From positions 124,001-188,000 of the forward strand of contig LSRY02000031.1 of the NCBI GenBank assembly GCA_001643675.2: DNA of 64,000 bases. Reading direction: 5' to 3'. The notes beneath the pieces are model-generated. The model did no database searches. It was not told where the DNA came from and was given only the letters and a program-made list of their open reading frames with translations. A program made the position numbers and the translations under genes. Shown here piece by piece: positions 5,946 to 62,249 of the stretch; within the stretch, counting starts at the first letter, position 1, and each line of letters starts with the position of its first letter. This DNA comes from Monocercomonoides exilis PA203. Its lineage: Eukaryota; Protista; Preaxostyla.

Positions 5946-7309
5946 TTGTGTATTCCGTTGCTTGAAAAAATTTTTTTATTATTGAATTGCTTTTTTTGCA
6001 GGAAGATTGCAATAAAGAAGTACAAAAACTATAAACGCTTGAAATTAATGGACCAATGGAGGAAATGGATGAAAAAATTATTCAATTCTATATTTACGAT
6101 ATGGCTGTTCGATAGGATGAATAAAACAATTGAGAAAGAGGAATCATCGACGAGGAATGCGTGTTTATTACTGAAGAGCTTGGGGCATTGCGCCATTCTG
6201 AAGAATTTATGGAACCTGGATTTTATACTATCATCATTGAGGTCTAGATTCGAGAAGATAATTATTTGTGAAAATAAAAAGAAAGAAGGAAAGGATATCA
6301 ATCTTCTTGTTGATCTTTGCGAATGCTGTCTTTTGCTTTTCTACAATCTTGACTCTGAAGAAGTATCAATATGTGTGCCTTGCCTTTTGAAGGTTGCGTT
6401 GAACAAGAAGAAAAACATAGAAATTCAAAGAATAGTGGAAATGGCCTTGCTGTCTTTGAGCCTAATTTATCAGTTGGATGTGTGATTGATTTATTAATCA
6501 GATTTCTGTTCATTTAGTGATGTTTTTTTTTATTTTATTATTTTTGATAAGGAAGTGGAACATAAAAAATTTTTGCGTGAAATCAAAGAAATTGTGCTAT
6601 ATCATCAGAAACATCATAATCTGACTCATCTTGCTTATCAATCAATTTGGCTTTATTTTACCTTCAGATTGGACTTTGACAAAAGCTTTAAGAAAGAGTT
6701 TGTGATTGAACTTCATTTTTTGAGAGAGGCAAAAAGTGAACTGGAAAATTTTATGAAATGTGTTGATTGGAAGAGAAAAGAAGAAAAAGAAAAAGAAACG
6801 AAAGAAGAGATTGTTTTGAAGAGATAGATCACATCATTGAATCGTAATTTTTACAAATCCAAATTGTGGAATGAAGAATATGCTGGGCTAATTGGCAGAA
6901 TTGTTCAGGCATATCAAGCAGTGAAGGATAATCACAGTGAAATTCACGTTAGTTGCCTTTCTTCATTCAAAAATGTATCAGATAAATAAAACGTGAAATT
7001 TGATGACAAATTGAAATGAAGAGTAATAGATAACATTTTGGAGGAGATACAGAGTCCAACGTTGGATGGCAAAATTGCAATTTCATTCTTGATATTTTTA
7101 ATGAAAGCTTTGAAGCCATTTAAAGAAAAGGAGATTTACGAAGAGGAAAAAATGAAAAGAAGAGTTGAAAAGGAAAGTGCATGAAAAGATGGTGGAAGAA
7201 AGACGAAGATTTCATTGTGTGTTTTCATGGAATATTTGTTTTTCTTAACGAAGAAAATGATGATGATAAATTATCGTTCGATATTTCTAATTTTCTTGAA
7301 AATGCTTAA
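5946..7309 (+). pseudogene. Disrupted member of the expanded helical protein family
   Basis: Same motifs as the paralogs (LLVDLCECCLLL, ICVPCLLKVAL, YHQKHHNLTHLAYQSIW, VDWKRK), but with a premature stop at 6825-6827 and further stops/frameshifts downstream. Confidence 0.75.
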
Positions 7310-47009: not shown

Positions 47010-48077
47010 TTAGGGTTCGTAATCAGAAGTTTTTTCTTCTTCTTGTGAAAGGCCCGATGTTTCTTCATCGCTGTTTTCATTATTGATTATGTCATCGATT
47101 GTTGGCAATTCTTCTTCGCTGTTTTCTGAATCATTTTCCACTTGCTCATGTTTTTCATTTTCTATCTCGTATTCACTGACAAATTCCAAAATTTTCAAGA
47201 AATTGTATTCTTTCGAGTCTTTAACCAAAACCATGGCAAGGTGATCTGCAATTAGGGACTTTCGAACTCCGTACGGGGGAAATGCTTTTCGCAAAGTTCC
47301 CCATAAACCTTTGATGGTGTTTGTGCATGCTTTTGTAACCGGGTCAACAAAATTCCTTTTGTGGCAGACTGTTCTGTGTTCATATCCTAATGTATTTAAG
47401 CATTCGTATGCCTTCCACTCATCGCTCATGATGATTGTTTCAGGCTTAATGTATTCAAGAATAATTGGAAGGAGCGTTTCTTTTGTTCTGTTTGGGACAA
47501 TCATCACAAATCGAGGTCCTGCTCCTCCACCGTCAAGCCTTTCCACTCCGCCAAACAACCGAATTTGCTCTTTTCTTCTTCCCCTTCTATTCTTTCTTCT
47601 ACGCCAGACAGCCTCATCTATTTCGATAATTTTTCCTTTTCCTCCAATATGTATTTGCTTTGAATTCCATATCTTCATGCACACTACCCTCAAAACGCTA
47701 GCCCAAAATGCAACTGTATTGCGATTAATGCCAATCAATTCTGCAGTTTTGTTAAAAGAAATTCCAACCCACTGTAACAAAAGTGTTCTTTAAGTTTTTC
47801 CCAACCCTATTTTGCTTTTTGAAAACACAGTCCCATCAAAAACAGATTTTTTGATTTTGCAGTGAGAATAGTTCCAATATCTGTAGTTTTTATCGTTCAT
47901 TTGGATTGTCATCCGTCTTCGGCATTTCTTGCACACAAAAACCTCGCCTTTGAAAAAAACCATGTAAAACCAATCCCACGTCAAATCTTCGTTGTGAAAA
48001 ATGACTTATAACTCACTCGTCGAGCATATCTCTCTTTCTGGAGCTGCCATCAAATGGGTGATTTTTTTTGACATCAT
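47010..48077 (-). pseudogene. Merlin / IS1595 (ISXO2-like) DDE transposase, disrupted
   Basis: N-terminal CKKC/C Zn-ribbon; motifs IEIDEA, FGGVER, VPNRTKETL, IMSDEWKAY, HRTVCH..NFVDP and TNTIKGLW (catalytic E appears as K). Stop near 48006 and frameshift near 47790. TIRs were not found. Confidence 0.9.
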
Positions 48078-54814: not shown

Positions 54815-57360
54815 TATATGCCGAAATAATTTCAAAATATTAACTTTTTTTTTATTTAATAACCAATTTTGAAAAAAAAGATAAATATTTTGAATGAAAT
54901 TTTTCCATTACTCATTATTTGGTGTCGTGATCAGTAATATCGGAATTTTGATACGTCACTGACGTCACATGAAGTCAGTTAAGAGATATTTTCAAAAAAA
55001 AAAAAAGAAGGAAAGATAAACAGTTTTATAACGAAACTAAACTATTGCGGCAATATGCCTTTAACTTTTTTGAAAAGCCAATGTGACTTACGGAGAAAAG
55101 TTTTTTTTCAGGAAAAAAACTTTTTTTGAAGTATCACCACAGATCAAAAAAATAAAACCATAATAGTTGGTGAAGTTCATTGAAAATTATAAAAATCAAC
55201 AGTTAACTTCGTTTTTCATCAAAAATATATTTTTTTACCCCTGGAAAAGAAATTTCATAAAATTAAAAAAAATGCAAACGATCAAAATAAATCTGTTTTT
55301 TCTCAACTTGCATTTATTTGCTTTGAAAAAAGAGCACTTTTCAAATCAAGATATTTTGAGTTTCATTTGAACATGAGATTTCATATCGAACAATATGCAG
55401 GTTTGCACAAATTTTGCATTTATTCAATTCTAAAATTTTTCCAAGTTAGAATTGCGCAGAAAATATATGCTATCCAACAATCGTTTCTAATAAAAACTTA
55501 TTCATTCAAAGATATTTAACATTAATTAAATGTTTCAGCCAGAAATGTATTCTGCAAAAAATTCTTTCATTTCAATTATTCCTATTCACCTTTTTTTGAA
55601 AAGAATGGCAATTGCATTTTCTTCTGCACAATTTGTGTGGGTAACAAAAGATTTAAAGGTTATCCTGGATACTTACTAATTATTTTATTAACTTCAGTTT
55701 CCTTTTTTGTTACCAAAGCATGTCACTAAACTTCGCTGTGTTGAATTTGACTCTTCTGCAAACAGTACGACAACAATCTCGTCTCTTCTTTTTCTTCTAA
55801 AGCTTCATTTCATTCATCCTGGTCACCACCTTCATCGTGTTCTGCAACTTTCACTTCTTCCACCAATTCGACAACTTTCACTTCCTCCTCTTCTTCTTCC
55901 TCGTTAGTTTTTTTTGAATGGAGTCTGAGAAGTTTCTAAATTGCAGGCAGAACTGCGTACAAGGTTTTGGTTTTTTTTTCCTGAAGCGAAAAGGAAGCGA
56001 AGACGGGATAGATGGGATTTGTATTTCGAAAAAAACTATATTTGGGAAAGAAAAAAAGAAGAAAGTCATAAAGAACAATCGTTGCAAAAAGGCATGGACA
56101 TATTTTTGAATACGCAACTTTTCATTCATTGCTTTTTTAATGTTATTAAGATTTTGCAAGGATGTTTAATGACAATGGTTGAACAAGGAATATGGAAAGA
56201 GTGCGTATTGGATTTACTAAAGAAGTCAGGATATAATAATTGGAAAGGCGTATAGAGGAAAGAACAGGTGAAAATATAAAAGAAAGGAAAGAAAAATGTT
56301 TTTCTAAAGGTATTGGAAGGCATTTACGATGAATCTTGTAAAAAGCTAAAAAAGAGGGAAACAAAAATTGATGATGTGGCAGAAGAAGAAATTTAACAAA
56401 AAGCTGAGAGGAAAAAGATATTTGACGGGAAGAAGAAGATATTTATTATCATTTGACTGTATGAGACGATTTGAGTGAAATGGAAGAAAAAGTGAAAAGT
56501 GAAAACACAATTTTGAGGGATATTTGAAGATGAGTCAAAAGAAAGGAATAAATGAAAGAAAAGGAAGAAAAAGAGAAAGAGGAAGAAAAAGAAGATGAAG
56601 AGGAGGAGTATGACAACGCCAATGACGATGTTTGTGGAGAAATCGAAGGATCGATCACATCCAATGCATTCTTAAAGGATAGCAGCATGTTGTTGATTGC
56701 CATCTCCATTGAACTCAGAACTTATAAGTGTTGAGCTAAAGAAGCAAATAATTGTGGCACATAGAAAGATGTAGCTTCTCTTCCCTCTTCAATGCTATTG
56801 TATCGTGAAACTGCATCACTTACAGCACGTATTCAAGCAGCACCCGAAAGTAGATCGCCACTTCCACCTCGTTCTTCCCCGGCTGCAGCCTCACATTCAC
56901 CGCCAGCAGCTGTTCCGTCTGGAATAGCGTACGCCACCCTTCTTTCCTCCCCACTTCCGTCTGCACCGCATCCATCAGCCGCTTCAGCCCTGCCCCTGCA
57001 CCTGCACCTGCCCCTGCAGATACCCATGCCGATACCCACGCAGACACCCCCACTGACACCACCAAAAGCACCTGCACCTGATCATCCAGCTCCTGTTAAC
57101 CATCTTTTCATCTGAGCTGTTCCATGATAGGAATGGAGGAGATCTGCACATGGAAGCATCGCACACATCTGCATGTATTACGCACAACATGAAGAAATCG
57201 TTGTTCTGGAACATCTCAAGCACCGATTCAAACGATGGCAGACCGAACCGCCGCAGCTGGCTCTCATCACTGAAGATTCGAAGCGAAAGCACCATCGGCA
57301 TCTTCATTTCCTTCTCCATCTTGTTCATCTTCTGCCTCACAATTACATCCACTCCTCCTA

Positions 57361-60278
57361 GGCATAAGTGTAAAAAAACACCTCCTCCAATTTCACGATT
57401 TCATTCATGATAATAAGTGGTAATAAATAACATAAAAAAACAACACTTTTGGGTGGAGCAGTTTTTTTCGATTTCAACACAAAAGATCAAAAATAAATAT
57501 TTGTGATCTGTCCCATTATTAAATTTTTATTTCAATATTTTTTGCATAAAATTTTAATGCTCGTGAATTGAATGTTGATCTTTGGATTTGATAATGCAGT
57601 ACTTAAAAACTTAACAAATGAGGTTTGAAATTTACACTTTATTTCTGTATTTAAACGCTATTTTATTAGTTTTATAAAATGTGATTTTGGAAGAGACTTC
57701 TTGTTTGCTCAAAAATTGTTCAATCAATGATCATGGTGGAGCAATATGTTGCGATTTCCTTCTTAACATAGACATTATAAAATGCAATTTCACAAGTTGT
57801 TCTGCTTTCCATGGAGAAGCAGCTGCTATATAGTGTACTCAAACAAATTCTGTTTGGATGTTCTCAGAAAACAAAGTGGAAAGTTGTTCAATCACAAACT
57901 GGTGTGGAACTGGTTGGTATTTTGCGATTGGCGGTTTTCCGTCAAATGGTCAATTCTATTTTCCAAATGTTGGTGTATCGCAAATTCTGGTGGTGATTCA
58001 ACTGGTTCTCTCACATTTCATTGGCCTCCACAAAATAAACCAAGTCAATTTTTGGTTAATGATTGCCAGTTCATAAAGAACGAATTGACAAGTTCATCAA
58101 CTTCCTATGGTGGCGCTGCTCTATGTTGCACAAACACCTTCACTTGGATGAGTGGAGTTAAATTCATCACATTCTGCTTCTTCGACTGTAACTTCGCTTC
58201 TGGTGGTAAAGGGAATGATGTGTTCTTTAACGGCAGCAACATAACTCAATCCCCATTCGAGAACTGTGGCTCAACAACCCCAACAAAAAGAGTTTGGAAT
58301 AGCAGCACAGCTGACAATGCTGTGTGTAACAGCTGGCTCCCTCTCATAAGCCAGAACAAAATTGTTGCAAATTACGGAGAAGATGTCGATGCATGTGGCA
58401 GAACCCAACAGACCCCATGTGCCACCATCGAGTATGCCCTCAACGGCTTTATTTCCCTCCTCCAAGACGCCTTCCTCGCTCTCCCCACCTCAATATTTGC
58501 TCCCACTCTAACGCTCTCTTTCGTTGCAACCGATGCAGAAATTTCTTAAAATGGAACAATTGCTCTTTCATTTGAATCTTCATGTAATGCCCATTGACAT
58601 TACTCATGTTCATCGTCATATTTTCTTCTTATCTTTTGCCTCTTTCTCTTCTTCTTCTTCTTCTTCCTCTTCCTCTTCCTCATCATCGATCTCTTCTCCA
58701 CCTTGTTATCTCCTCTACTCTCATTCAGATCTTCAATACTCCTTCTTCGACTTTTTCGTGATCTTCTGTTTTCTCCTGTAATCTCTCTCTTCTCATTTAA
58801 TACCCACTTTCATGAGTATTGGCTCTGTCCTCTCCATCGAAAACCCTTTTTTCAGAGCAAAATTCGTAATTCGCACAGGTTCCACCTGGCTAAAAGAAGC
58901 CATATGCCTGTGAGTCATTGAATTCAACATCAGAAAGAAGTCCCTCCCACCCTTCAAACTCTTCAAGCACATCCTCAGAAGCTCCTTAAGAAGAACCAAC
59001 TTCGCAAAGAAAGTCAACTATGGTGGACTCCTTAACTGAATCTTAAACATTCACGATTCTACAAGACTTATCCACACTTGCCTCGTCACTGCCGAACTAC
59101 CTCGCAACAATGAAATCGTCAGAGCATTCGTAATACCTCGTTAACGACTTGAACCTCCTTCCTTATTCGCACTTTAACAACTTTCTCTTCTGAACAGCTG
59201 TTTTTTACAAACAAACATATACAAGTTCGCTTCATGTTTTTATTCTCCACATTTCATAAAACAAAAATAGTCTATTTTTATAATATCATCTATTTGATCA
59301 GAAAAAGAAATTGATAAAGAGACAAAAAAGTTGAAGCAAAAGAAAGGAAATCAAAAGAATGCTATCAGAAAAGATGAAAATATGAAAAAGATAGACAAAA
59401 TGATATTGTTTATGTTATGGTTTGTTTTTCTGTTTTGATATATAAAAATGTGTCAATAGGTGTTTCAAATAGCTCATTTTTGTTGTTTTCTTGAGGTTTA
59501 AAAAAGAAAACATTCTTGCATTACATCAAAAAAACAAAAAATGCATCATTATTTTCTGTTTGTGAACATGAAATATTTTCGTATTTTTAAAAGTTTTACT
59601 TTTTTAACATTTGAACTTTATGCCACATTAAAAAAATATCTTGACTTTTCTTTCTTATGAAAATTCTGAAATGATTATCACTTAATAAGATGAACACACA
59701 CGACTGAGATGTGCAAATAATCATATAACATAAACGTTCATTTTCCCTTATTCAAACACAACAATTATAATTGTCTTTATTTCAAAGTTATTGCTCACCA
59801 GTTTTAAGATTGCAAAACAAATAAACAACGATTTTAATAGTTTAAAAAAGACCAAGAAAAAATCAAATACTTAATTTGACATTATACAAAATAAAAAAAT
59901 GGAAATATTAATTCAACAAAATTAAATGAAATTATTATTTTACAACTGTCATATAGGTGTAAGTTAGTAATCAATAGAACAGCATTGAAAAGGGAATAAA
60001 AACTGTGTGTAATCGTTATAATTTATGATTTAAAAATTGTTGCGTAATTTATTCCTAAGATCAACATTCAATTCACGAGCATTAAAATTTTATGCAAAAA
60101 ATATTGAAATAAAAATTTAATAATGGGACAGATCACAAATATTTATTTTTGATCTTTTGTGTTGAAATCGAAAAAAACTGCTCCACCCAAAAGTGTTGTT
60201 TTTTTATGTTATTTATTACCACTTATTATCATGAATGAAATCGTGAAATTGGAGGAGGTGTTTTTTTACACTTATGCC
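57361..60278. mobile_element. Pack-MULE-like non-autonomous element (2918 bp)
   Basis: Perfect 222-bp TIRs at 57361-57582 and 60057-60278 starting GGCATAAG. The 9-bp TSD is CTCCTCCTA (57352-60) / CTTCTCCTA (60279-87). The interior holds host gene fragments and no transposase. Confidence 0.9.
57710..58549 (+). pseudogene. Captured surface-protein gene fragment inside the Pack element
   Basis: Collinear with ~44310-45140 (DHGGAI...ANSGGDS...YGGAAL...FCFFD...CG.T..PCATIEYAL) and truncated at both ends. Confidence 0.85.
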
Positions 60279-62249
60279 CTTCTCCTAAACATCCAAAACC
60301 ACAACAGCCACCATTGGACCGAAAGCTGTTCTTCTCAGATCTCTCACTGATCAAAGATCTCATACACTCACTTCAGCCTCCTCCTTACCCACAGCTGTTT
60401 GCTACTCCTTCAACACTTGCCCCACTCTTTTCTTTCACAGAAAGCTCTTTCTTTCTTTCGTCTGGCCCAATCATCACAGTGCCACGATCTCCGATGCTAC
60501 AGGAAAACTTCTCCTGAAACTTTTTATGCAACTTTGAAGTCAAGATCAATTTGGCTGAAGACGGAACGATCCTTCCACACACAAAAACTGGTAAAGAAGA
60601 CGAAGCAAACAACGACATCGAACTCACCAGCGAACCCGTGCTATCACCATTCACCACCCAGCACTGCTGCGTCCTAAGCTTCTTCTCCTTCTCAATCCCC
60701 ACATCAATCAGCTGTGTCTTCTTCTTCATTGCCACCAGCTGATCCTGCATCTCCTACACATCTCAGTTGCATTTCTTGCTCAGCTCCAAATTTTCCTCTC
60801 CTGCAACAAGATGATTCAGCCCTTTCCCTGAAGTTGCTCTTAAAGTTCGCCAGTTCGCTTCGAAATTTGCACGTCAGCACGAACCTCTTTCAGCAGAGCG
60901 TTTTTCTTTTAAAACCTCTTCTCATTTTTCAACTTCATCTCCTCGTTCTGATCCTTCTGCTTCCGGACATTTCGCCTCAGCCCACATTTCCCCCACATCA
61001 GCTCTTCCACCATCTCCTCGTTCTTCCAGGAAGTTCCACTCTGCATCTGCGCTTCATTCGCCTTCACAATGAAAAAACTGATCTATGAGCTGGATGTATT
61101 GAAGAAGATGATGAAAGTTTAAAAAACGAAGGAGTCAATAGTGATATGAAGATAAGAAAAGGAAAAACAAATAATTCATTCTCACTTTCTTTTCATTATT
61201 TATCTTTGAGATAAATAAGAACTCTTCATATCATTTATTAATTCTTTTTTGTTTTTGCTTAAATGCACAAAAATCTTCAAATTTTTTTTTGTCAAAATAC
61301 AAATAAGTTCTATCATAATTATTGTCGTATATTTTTGGATTCAAAAAATGTGTGAAAGTCGAAAAACTGATTTTTTGAAAATTTAAATATTAACGTATAT
61401 AAAGCATTTATCAAAATAAAAATTTGCATAATGAAATTTGATAGATAATGATTGTTATAATTCTAACAATTTTTATGTGAAACTCATTTAGTCAAAAAGA
61501 TTACAAAAGAAAATTCAAGTTGAACGTGTTGCGCTTTCATTTCTCCAAAAATAACAAATAAACTTCTTTTATTGTTACATATAGATAATGTCAATGATAA
61601 AATAATTAAAATGGAAGTGATCAAAAGCTTTCGTCTGAATAAAATGAATGAGTGAATAGAAAGAGAAATAATTACGGTTAACAAAAATAAGTCTCGGATT
61701 TAATGTGGGATAGATCAGGCTAAAAAAAAGTGATTTTTCAAAAAATTTCACCAACATCATAGTTCAATGCACAATGATATAATAAATACAATAAAAAAAT
61801 GAATAAAACATGAACAATAATTTTTCGAAAGGGAAATGTTGTTTTATTAAAAAATCATAATGGGTTGTTCCGCGGCAGATTTGAATTGCGGATTTTTGAA
61901 AAATCTGACACGGAAGGAAAAAAGTTCCCGTCACACGTAGATTTGTTGATTATTATATTAACATGGATCGAGAAGACTTATTGTCAACATTCGAATTGAA
62001 TGATGAATTCAAACTGAGCTTAAAAGATCGTAATGTGGTTTGATATTCTTTCTGATTAACTTTTTATCAACTGTTCAAACATATTTAAATATTTCTTTTT
62101 CAAGTGCACAGCATGTAAAAGCATGTGAAACCTTTGCAAATAGAGAAAGGGCATATCATCACTTTGGAGAAGCTGCAATCAACTCCAAAAAGGCAATGTT
62201 TGCCACTACGATCTCAACATAATGTTTGATTTTTTTGTTCAAATCTATC

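Follow-up and report, generated by a model that had tools for sequence, protein, structure and literature searches.

The 64,000-nt stretch of the Monocercomonoides exilis PA203 genome analysed here (the window, to which all coordinates without a prefix refer) carries at 57361-60278 a 2918-bp element that is bounded by long terminal inverted repeats (TIRs) and contains a piece of a host gene. The question raised by this locus is what kind of transposon the element is and how the gene fragment came to be inside it. An earlier note on this DNA had read it as a Pack-MULE, a non-autonomous Mutator-like element (MULE) with recently captured host gene fragments. The element is a member of the Merlin family and not a MULE, and it is very likely a non-autonomous Merlin (IS1595-like DDE) element whose inherited ectodomain cargo was repeatedly overwritten by sequence of a host gene family. 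The genome searched was the M. exilis PA203 assembly (82,301,135 bases, 101 contigs), in which the element lies at C27:181361-184278; C-numbers denote assembly contigs and L-numbers are working names for loci.

Element structure and target site

The element and its target site duplication (TSD) were composed of the following features.

57352-57360, no strand: left TSD copy, CTCCTCCTA; its single copy at paralogous empty sites shows its target origin
57361-57582, + strand: left TIR, 222 nt, perfect, starting with GGCATAAGTG, with imperfect pairing on to 57598; the terminus is common to all family copies
57696-58522, + strand: cargo, a pseudogene fragment (about 320 codons) from the ectodomain of a giant receptor-like kinase family
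57893-58450, + strand: replaced cargo core, 25% different from the closest copy, compared with 3.5% elsewhere
58523-60056, no strand: backbone, element-specific, AT-rich and non-coding, present only in 12 family loci
60057-60278, - strand: right TIR, 222 nt, perfect
60279-60287, no strand: right TSD copy, CTTCTCCTA, with the third base changed from C to T after insertion

The repeat finder placed the inverted arms at 57361-57598 and 60041-60278 (238 nt, 97% identical). Base-by-base comparison showed that the outer 222 nt of the arms had no mismatch, that all mismatches were at positions 223-235 and that similarity ended abruptly after them. The identical 222-bp inverted repeats reported by the earlier note were therefore exact (57361-57582 and 60057-60278, zero mismatches), as was its 9-bp direct repeat, in which CTCCTCCTA on the left and CTTCTCCTA on the right match at 8 of 9 positions. 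The absence of a transposase was also confirmed, as tblastn with the family transposase gave no match inside the element and no long open reading frame (ORF) was present besides the cargo.

The left and right 600-nt flanks each matched several genome sites at 86-91%, and these matches abutted with a 9-nt overlap at C25, C34 and C11. The predicted empty site was located by pattern search at two places, C34:517053-517083 (ACATCCA CTCCTCCTT AACATCC) and C25:1247781-1247811 (ACATCCA ATCCTCCTT AACATCC). Since the 9-mer is single-copy at these two uninterrupted paralogous sites, the element is a true insertion with a real 9-bp duplication. Its target was a copy of an unclassified repeat, which it entered by cut-and-paste with a target duplication of 9 bp, and the TSD mismatch arose after insertion, when C changed to T in the right copy. 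The empty-site paralogues, as well as the palindrome lengths, an autonomous copy on C63 and the right end of the locus L049, were read from coordinates and one pattern search.

The target DNA (56760-57360 and 60279-60880) is a dispersed repeat with four long paralogues (C25:1247202-1248390, C34:516600-517668, C58:1804854-1806045 and C11:782390-783291) and dozens of weaker ones. The identity of the paralogues was 86-91% for the left flank (C25, C34, C58) and 75-91% for the right flank. A Pfam search of the ORFs flanking the insertion gave no family and the target repeat thus remains unclassified. The empty site joined computationally had spanning open frames of 153 and 177 codons with no known family.

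Merlin assignment and the transposon family

The search of the genome with the TIR produced 41 matches, which resolved into at least 19 elements (at least 18 besides the one in the window) and a few solo or truncated ends. Among the paired elements, 15 were 2.5-3.9 kb and four were 6.5-9.7 kb long. The family termini were all GGCATAAGTG, i.e. with a GG start, and the entire 2.9-kb interior was conserved at 72-92% among the small copies. Perfect 8-bp TSDs were found at twelve copies (AAAATCAT, CATTTTTG, AGGTCATC, GAAAATAA, GATTTTTC, TTCTTTTC, CGATTTTT, TCAAAGAA, AATCATAT, ATTAAAGC, AGAAAAAG and CTTAGTTC), so that 12 of the 13 informative copies had an 8-bp TSD and the copy in the window a 9-bp one. 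A TIR unique to this locus, or a misassembly, is contradicted by the 18 or more other pairs, twelve of them with a perfect TSD, and by the empty sites. The earlier view that the element is mobile and non-autonomous and encloses part of a host gene between its TIRs is supported. The non-cargo backbone (58560-60040) matched 12 family loci only and no host genes; it is therefore element-specific and not a second host fragment, and the plural "fragments" of the earlier note are reduced to one. A truncated family copy with one TIR, L050 (C27:916954-918581), consists of the right half only (element positions 1281-2918).

Merlin elements are recognised by GG termini, 8-9-bp TSDs and a DDE_Tnp_IS1595 transposase (PMC8101967), and their TIRs have a terminal 5'-GG-3' and a length of 24-462 bp (PMC8101967, citing Feschotte 2004). 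The element starts with GGCATAAGTG and ends with CACTTATGCC, its 222-bp TIRs are within this range, and both TSD lengths, 9 bp here and 8 bp in the sister copies, agree with Merlin. The DDE_Tnp_IS1595 transposase was found in autonomous elements that share its termini. Pfam search of the large copies identified PF12762 (DDE_Tnp_IS1595) with E 3e-17 in L049 and 1.5e-17 in L047, and tblastn showed that the transposase copies of L046 and L048 are 95-98% identical to this protein. Overall, the matching transposase was present in five copies with 95-100% amino-acid identity, four of them with uninterrupted frames, and at least 690 candidate Merlin transposase matches were found in the genome. The translations contain the motifs EIDET, YSDMW and TIECMW, which we take to be the Merlin DDE blocks. 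The GG termini, the 8-9-bp TSDs and the IS1595-type DDE of the TIR-sharing relatives together place the element in Merlin, which the earlier note had named as the alternative type of mobiliser.

The long TIRs with an initial G, the 9-bp TSD of this copy and the host fragment inside it had suggested the Pack-MULE, i.e. a Mutator-like non-autonomous element that recently captured a host fragment. However, the family does not have the 9-11-bp TSDs of such elements, as twelve sister copies have TSDs of 8 bp, and the TIR-sharing relatives encode DDE_Tnp_IS1595 and not a MuDR-type transposase. In addition, the MULE domain PF10551 had no match anywhere in the 82-Mb genome and the cargo is common to the whole family. 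The Pack-MULE is thus extremely improbable and the MULE assignment was abandoned.

The nearest relative of the matching lineage, L049, starts at C27:188301, which is 4 kb past the element and 300 bp past the end of the window. The TIRs of the element and of the autonomous copies were identical over the first 19 nt and 78% identical over 163 nt; the autonomous copy with the same TIR that the earlier note anticipated was found as relatives with homologous TIRs and a Merlin transposase, but not with the exact TIR. The element was collinear with L046 at 60-79% in three parts, positions 1-295 (the TIR), 419-1327 (the cargo and 165 nt) and 2226-2918. Of the backbone 58523-60056, ~165 nt at the start and ~530 nt at the end (~700 nt including the right TIR) were collinear with autonomous elements, while the transposase region was missing and about 900 nt of the middle could not be aligned. 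A simple recent deletion derivative of an autonomous element was rejected on account of this limited collinearity, and the alignment indicates an old non-autonomous lineage and not a fresh deletion.

In the hybrid L048 (L048:301-6802 = C48:349895-356396) the left TIR is of the autonomous type, whereas the right one is of the type found in the element (90%), so that its arms are only 78% alike; its transposase frame of 642 codons is intact and its 8-bp TSD (CTTAGTTC) is perfect. One TIR of each type within a perfect TSD argues that both types are recognised together. The element may accordingly have been moved in trans by the transposase of its larger relatives, for which L048 provides the one, indirect, line of evidence. 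The Merlin transposase 10 kb away, which the earlier note had offered as a mobiliser (fragment at 47010-47933, - strand, with the match at 47010-47780 and PF12762 at E 1e-18), was rejected, because it is a Merlin of another lineage (30% identical) and no termini similar to those of the element were found elsewhere in the window.

L049 (L049:301-10000 = C27:188301-198049) is a 9.7-kb autonomous Merlin with a nested element of about 2.4 kb inside. The nested element has 189-nt inverted repeats at L049:4756-4944 and 6981-7169 and carries a different ORF of 428 codons in which GGG-x-hydrophobic repeats are abundant. On C27 the transposase has an open frame of 643 codons, which takes in C27:195837-197066. 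The transposase (L049:7156-9066, L047:5409-6689 and L046:4569-5930, all on the - strand) has a C-terminal EKEEKEM tandem array, with a copy number that varies between copies, and an N-terminal CxxC...CxxC pair, whereas Merlin enzymes were described as being without the IS1595 zinc finger (PMC8101967).

Merlin has been reported in Monocercomonoides with more than 100 copies in at least 7 families, 8-bp TSDs, GG termini, DDE_Tnp_IS1595 and TIRs of 23-29 bp (PMC8101967). The element shares with these the organism, the GG termini, the 8-9-bp TSDs and, in its autonomous relatives, the IS1595-type DDE. The published families were described via transposase copies and have the short TIRs, while the element has 222-bp perfect TIRs and no transposase and, unlike them, a host gene fragment is present both in it and in its autonomous relatives. 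The text of PMC8101967 does not contain "non-autonomous" or "MITE" and describes no gene capture by Merlin elements. Merlin itself is already published for M. exilis.

Origin and replacement of the cargo

Nucleotide homology to the host family covered 827 bp (57696-58522, element positions 336-1162), in agreement with the internal ~840-bp piece of a surface-protein family noticed earlier. Protein homology covered 57678-58618 (~320 residues) in two frames, with one in-frame stop near 57840 and a frameshift near 57956-57962. The cargo was 78-82% identical over the 827 bp to giant receptor-like kinase genes, a family with more than 1500 candidate matches in the genome, many of them in open frames of 2500-3100 codons. 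In the annotated members (M. exilis MONOS_ proteins) a single transmembrane-like segment precedes a C-terminal PF07714 kinase, and the cargo-like region is N-terminal to the transmembrane segment. The database relatives of the host gene were all MONOS_ proteins of M. exilis, and the protein tyrosine kinase family, which is the host family of the cargo, was named among the largest in the genome (PMC8767320). No Pfam family was recognised in the cargo ORF, in its counterparts from the autonomous elements or in 1180-aa pieces taken from two host genes.

The huge size of this family, its overlap with the "unclassified repeats" of the genome paper (PMC8767320) and an ectodomain without a Pfam family could also mean that the fragment is a gene of the element, with a "host" family that is derived from or spread by transposons and nothing captured at all. 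However, the cargo comprises ~320 of ~3000 codons from the middle of the ectodomain and lacks both a start and an end, and stops or frameshifts interrupt it in several copies, while the full genes with transmembrane segment and kinase have long open frames outside TIR pairs. The fragment is therefore highly unlikely to be a gene of the element.

The left cargo junction was at host coordinate 1246-1248 in 8 small copies and the right one at about 2076-2124 in most, and the autonomous copies carry the cargo fragment at the same place as the small copies. The shared junctions and the shared site indicate that the capture predates the family, and that the cargo was inherited from the ancestor of the whole family and not captured by the copy in the window. 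This ancestor probably acquired a receptor-like kinase ectodomain fragment of ~0.8 kb, which is now inherited baggage. The recent capture proposed by the earlier note is contradicted by this family-wide position of the cargo, transposase-bearing copies included, and the search for its intact parent gene found no match above 82% identity in the assembly. In the generic sense of a Pack-type element, the element is a non-autonomous TIR element with a non-transposon host gene fragment inside, but neither an identifiable parental gene nor an element-specific capture event was found.

The closest copy, L032 (C43:685596-688512), was 96-100% identical to the element in 100-nt windows, except at element positions 533-1090 (57893-58450). 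Over this core of 558 bp the two copies were 70-85% identical with no indels, with 144 mismatches in 570 positions in the core and 82 in 2346 outside (Fisher 8e-53). For 119 of the 144 differing core sites, other members of the family had both alleles; bases private to the two copies numbered only 9 and 17, and the transitions:transversions were 72:72. The allele test and the cargo tree were based on a sample of about 34 of the more than 1500 cargo homologues. As the differing bases are alleles known from the family and transitions are as frequent as transversions, the core holds imported family variation and not local hypermutation, and hypermutation of the cargo was rejected. The tract indicates a homologous replacement, in all likelihood by sequence of the host family. 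The cargo core was also the more divergent part in four further pairs of copies.

L033/L034: TIR identity 96%, cargo core identity 77%
L044/L045: TIR identity 98.5%, cargo core identity 81%
L046/L047: TIR identity 96.5%, cargo core identity 72%
L047/L049: TIR identity 98%, cargo core identity 90.5%

In the cargo tree the elements were interleaved with host paralogs; the small elements required 5 label changes and were monophyletic in no bootstrap tree. A near-identical donor was not found in the assembly for either cargo version (best 82% and 81%), and a scan in 60-nt windows against ~33 homologues showed a best match that shifts along the tract, with no long identical patch and no donor that could be assigned. 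Since no donor exceeds 82%, the tract is probably a mosaic, or the donors have changed since.

In L033 (L033:301-3858 = C2:182363-185920) the cargo runs on past its usual end for another 415 nt of host sequence, after which 106 nt of the old end are repeated, and the extended cargo lies within a 444-codon open frame. Such extra sequence was otherwise seen in host genes only, the other sampled element copies lacking it; the template was thus probably a host gene, from which copying probably lengthened the cargo. A second diverged patch was observed between L046 and L047 at oriented element positions 201-1000 (L046:6230-7029), with 70-88% identity compared with 96-100% elsewhere. It is located in an AT-rich non-coding stretch upstream of the transposase, and exchange between element lineages would thus extend beyond the cargo.

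Cores of close copies that differ by 19-28%, element cargos scattered among host paralogs in the tree, the new host sequence gained by L033 and a left junction that varies by subgroup (host coordinates 1246, 1311 and 1331) could also be produced if each copy had independently captured the same host region, with no single capture followed by replacement. Against this, the cargo edges and both backbones of the element and L032 were 96-100% identical and the tract ended without an indel, the left junction was identical in eight copies, and the homology between small and autonomous elements continued 165 nt past the point where host homology stops. Junctions of this kind would not recur under independent capture, which we consider improbable. 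Under one ancestral capture with later replacement, homology-directed repair would repeatedly overwrite the cargo with family sequence, and in one copy would have lengthened it. The cargo would be the part affected, as it alone, of all parts of the element, has over 1500 homologous templates in the genome. Two routes may be considered, gene conversion and, following excision, gap repair that involves template switching. Template switching during repair is the favoured origin of Pack-type elements as well (PMC8277862, PMC5861414).

Arm homogenisation, palindromes and significance

The 5 TIR differences between the element and L032 were all present in both arms (mirrored:one-arm 5:0). The ratios were 8:0 for L033/L034, 18:1 for the element and L033, and 63:1 for the element and L044, and the arms of other family copies were imperfect (88-98%). 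Independent mutation cannot produce such mirrored differences, which shows that copying keeps the two arms of each element alike. Repair on the inverted arms would keep the TIRs of each copy identical and occasionally turn a copy into the centre of a palindrome.

Palindromes were found at four copies (one on C48, one on C53 and two on C91), where the flanks were mutually inverted at 99.5-100% over at least 1300-1500 bp and no TSD was present. The flank loci were L007/L008, L024/L028, L026/L027 and L029/L030, and the copies at the centres were as follows.

C48:314733-317999: L034
C53:~496069-499275: L040
C91:1062826-1065338: L042
C91:1519982-1522493: L043

The palindrome flanks were unrelated between loci, apart from the two C91 loci, which are duplicates of each other. 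All palindromes were located inside contigs and one ended after 1300 bp. They fit fold-back or break-induced copying mediated by inverted repeats, as far as can be judged from their sequence. A piece of a different Merlin transposase (33% identical) was present in each arm of the C91 palindromes. With neither a GG terminus nor a TSD, the outer ends of the C91 palindrome were rejected as transposon ends.

The assembly was produced from Oxford Nanopore Technologies (ONT) reads with ten rounds of short-read polishing (PMC8767320), and assemblers are able to create perfect palindromes such as those around four of the copies. Misassembly or polishing might thus account for the inverted repeat or for the identity of its arms. 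However, the architecture recurs at 19 or more loci with differing TSDs and flanks, the empty paralogous sites agree base for base, and the arms are imperfect in other copies and carry up to 63 mirrored co-divergent changes, while the palindromes lie within contigs and one of them has a defined end. We give next to no credence to an artefact.

Several points weigh against the non-autonomous Merlin element with an overwritten cargo. With no donor above 82%, the donors would have to be lost, themselves overwritten, or many and short, and the tree and the allele test cover about 34 of the more than 1500 cargo homologues. The autonomous TIRs are only 78% identical to those of the element and no autonomous copy in the assembly has its exact TIR, so that we infer the trans-mobilisation, and the TSD of the element is 9 bp while that of the family is 8 bp. 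Ten-round polishing could make near-identical arms look perfect, although it cannot explain 63 mirrored differences. Finally, the palindromes are known from the assembly alone.

DNA transposons that carry gene fragments are well known, namely Mutator in plants and hAT and Tc1/mariner in animals. Pack-type TIR elements were described from plants and animals, in animals mostly as hAT and Tc1/mariner (PMC8277862), and "Merlin" is absent from the main text of that animal survey. The element resembles the Pack-MULEs of plants and the Pack-TIRs of animals (PMC8277862, PMC5861414) as a non-autonomous TIR element that amplifies a host fragment by transposition. It differs from them in its superfamily (Merlin) and host (a metamonad protist), in having one cargo site in all copies, transposase-bearing ones included, and not many captures, and in a cargo that comes from a 1500-member family and is repeatedly overwritten. 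Foldback and other long-TIR elements, such as Drosophila FB4 (PMC8277862), and inverted duplications mediated by inverted repeats are similar in having long arms alike within a copy, frequent arm rearrangement and cargo genes amplified with the element. In contrast to these, the element has arms that are not built from tandem repeats and a partner transposase that is identifiable, and the palindromes continue beyond the TIRs into flanking DNA unrelated to them.

In the literature searched, no description was found of a Merlin that carries a gene fragment, or of such transposons in metamonad protists. The family also has a cargo inherited alike by autonomous and non-autonomous copies and rewritten by a host gene family, and is thereby a natural system in which ectopic repair and gene conversion can be measured between transposons and the genes of a large family of surface receptors. 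The family may account for part of the "unclassified repeats" that make up 35% of the M. exilis genome (PMC8767320), and the co-evolving arms and element-centred palindromes suggest that the genome is actively rearranged at these long inverted repeats. A further idea, which we hold as speculative and doubtful, is that the gene fragment serves as a homology handle for continuous and possibly two-way exchange with the host family, with the elements acting as mobile donors and acceptors of ectodomain cassettes. If so, transposons would help to diversify a surface-receptor family, and the same repair activity, acting on the long arms, would make the TIRs uniform and give rise to large palindromes.

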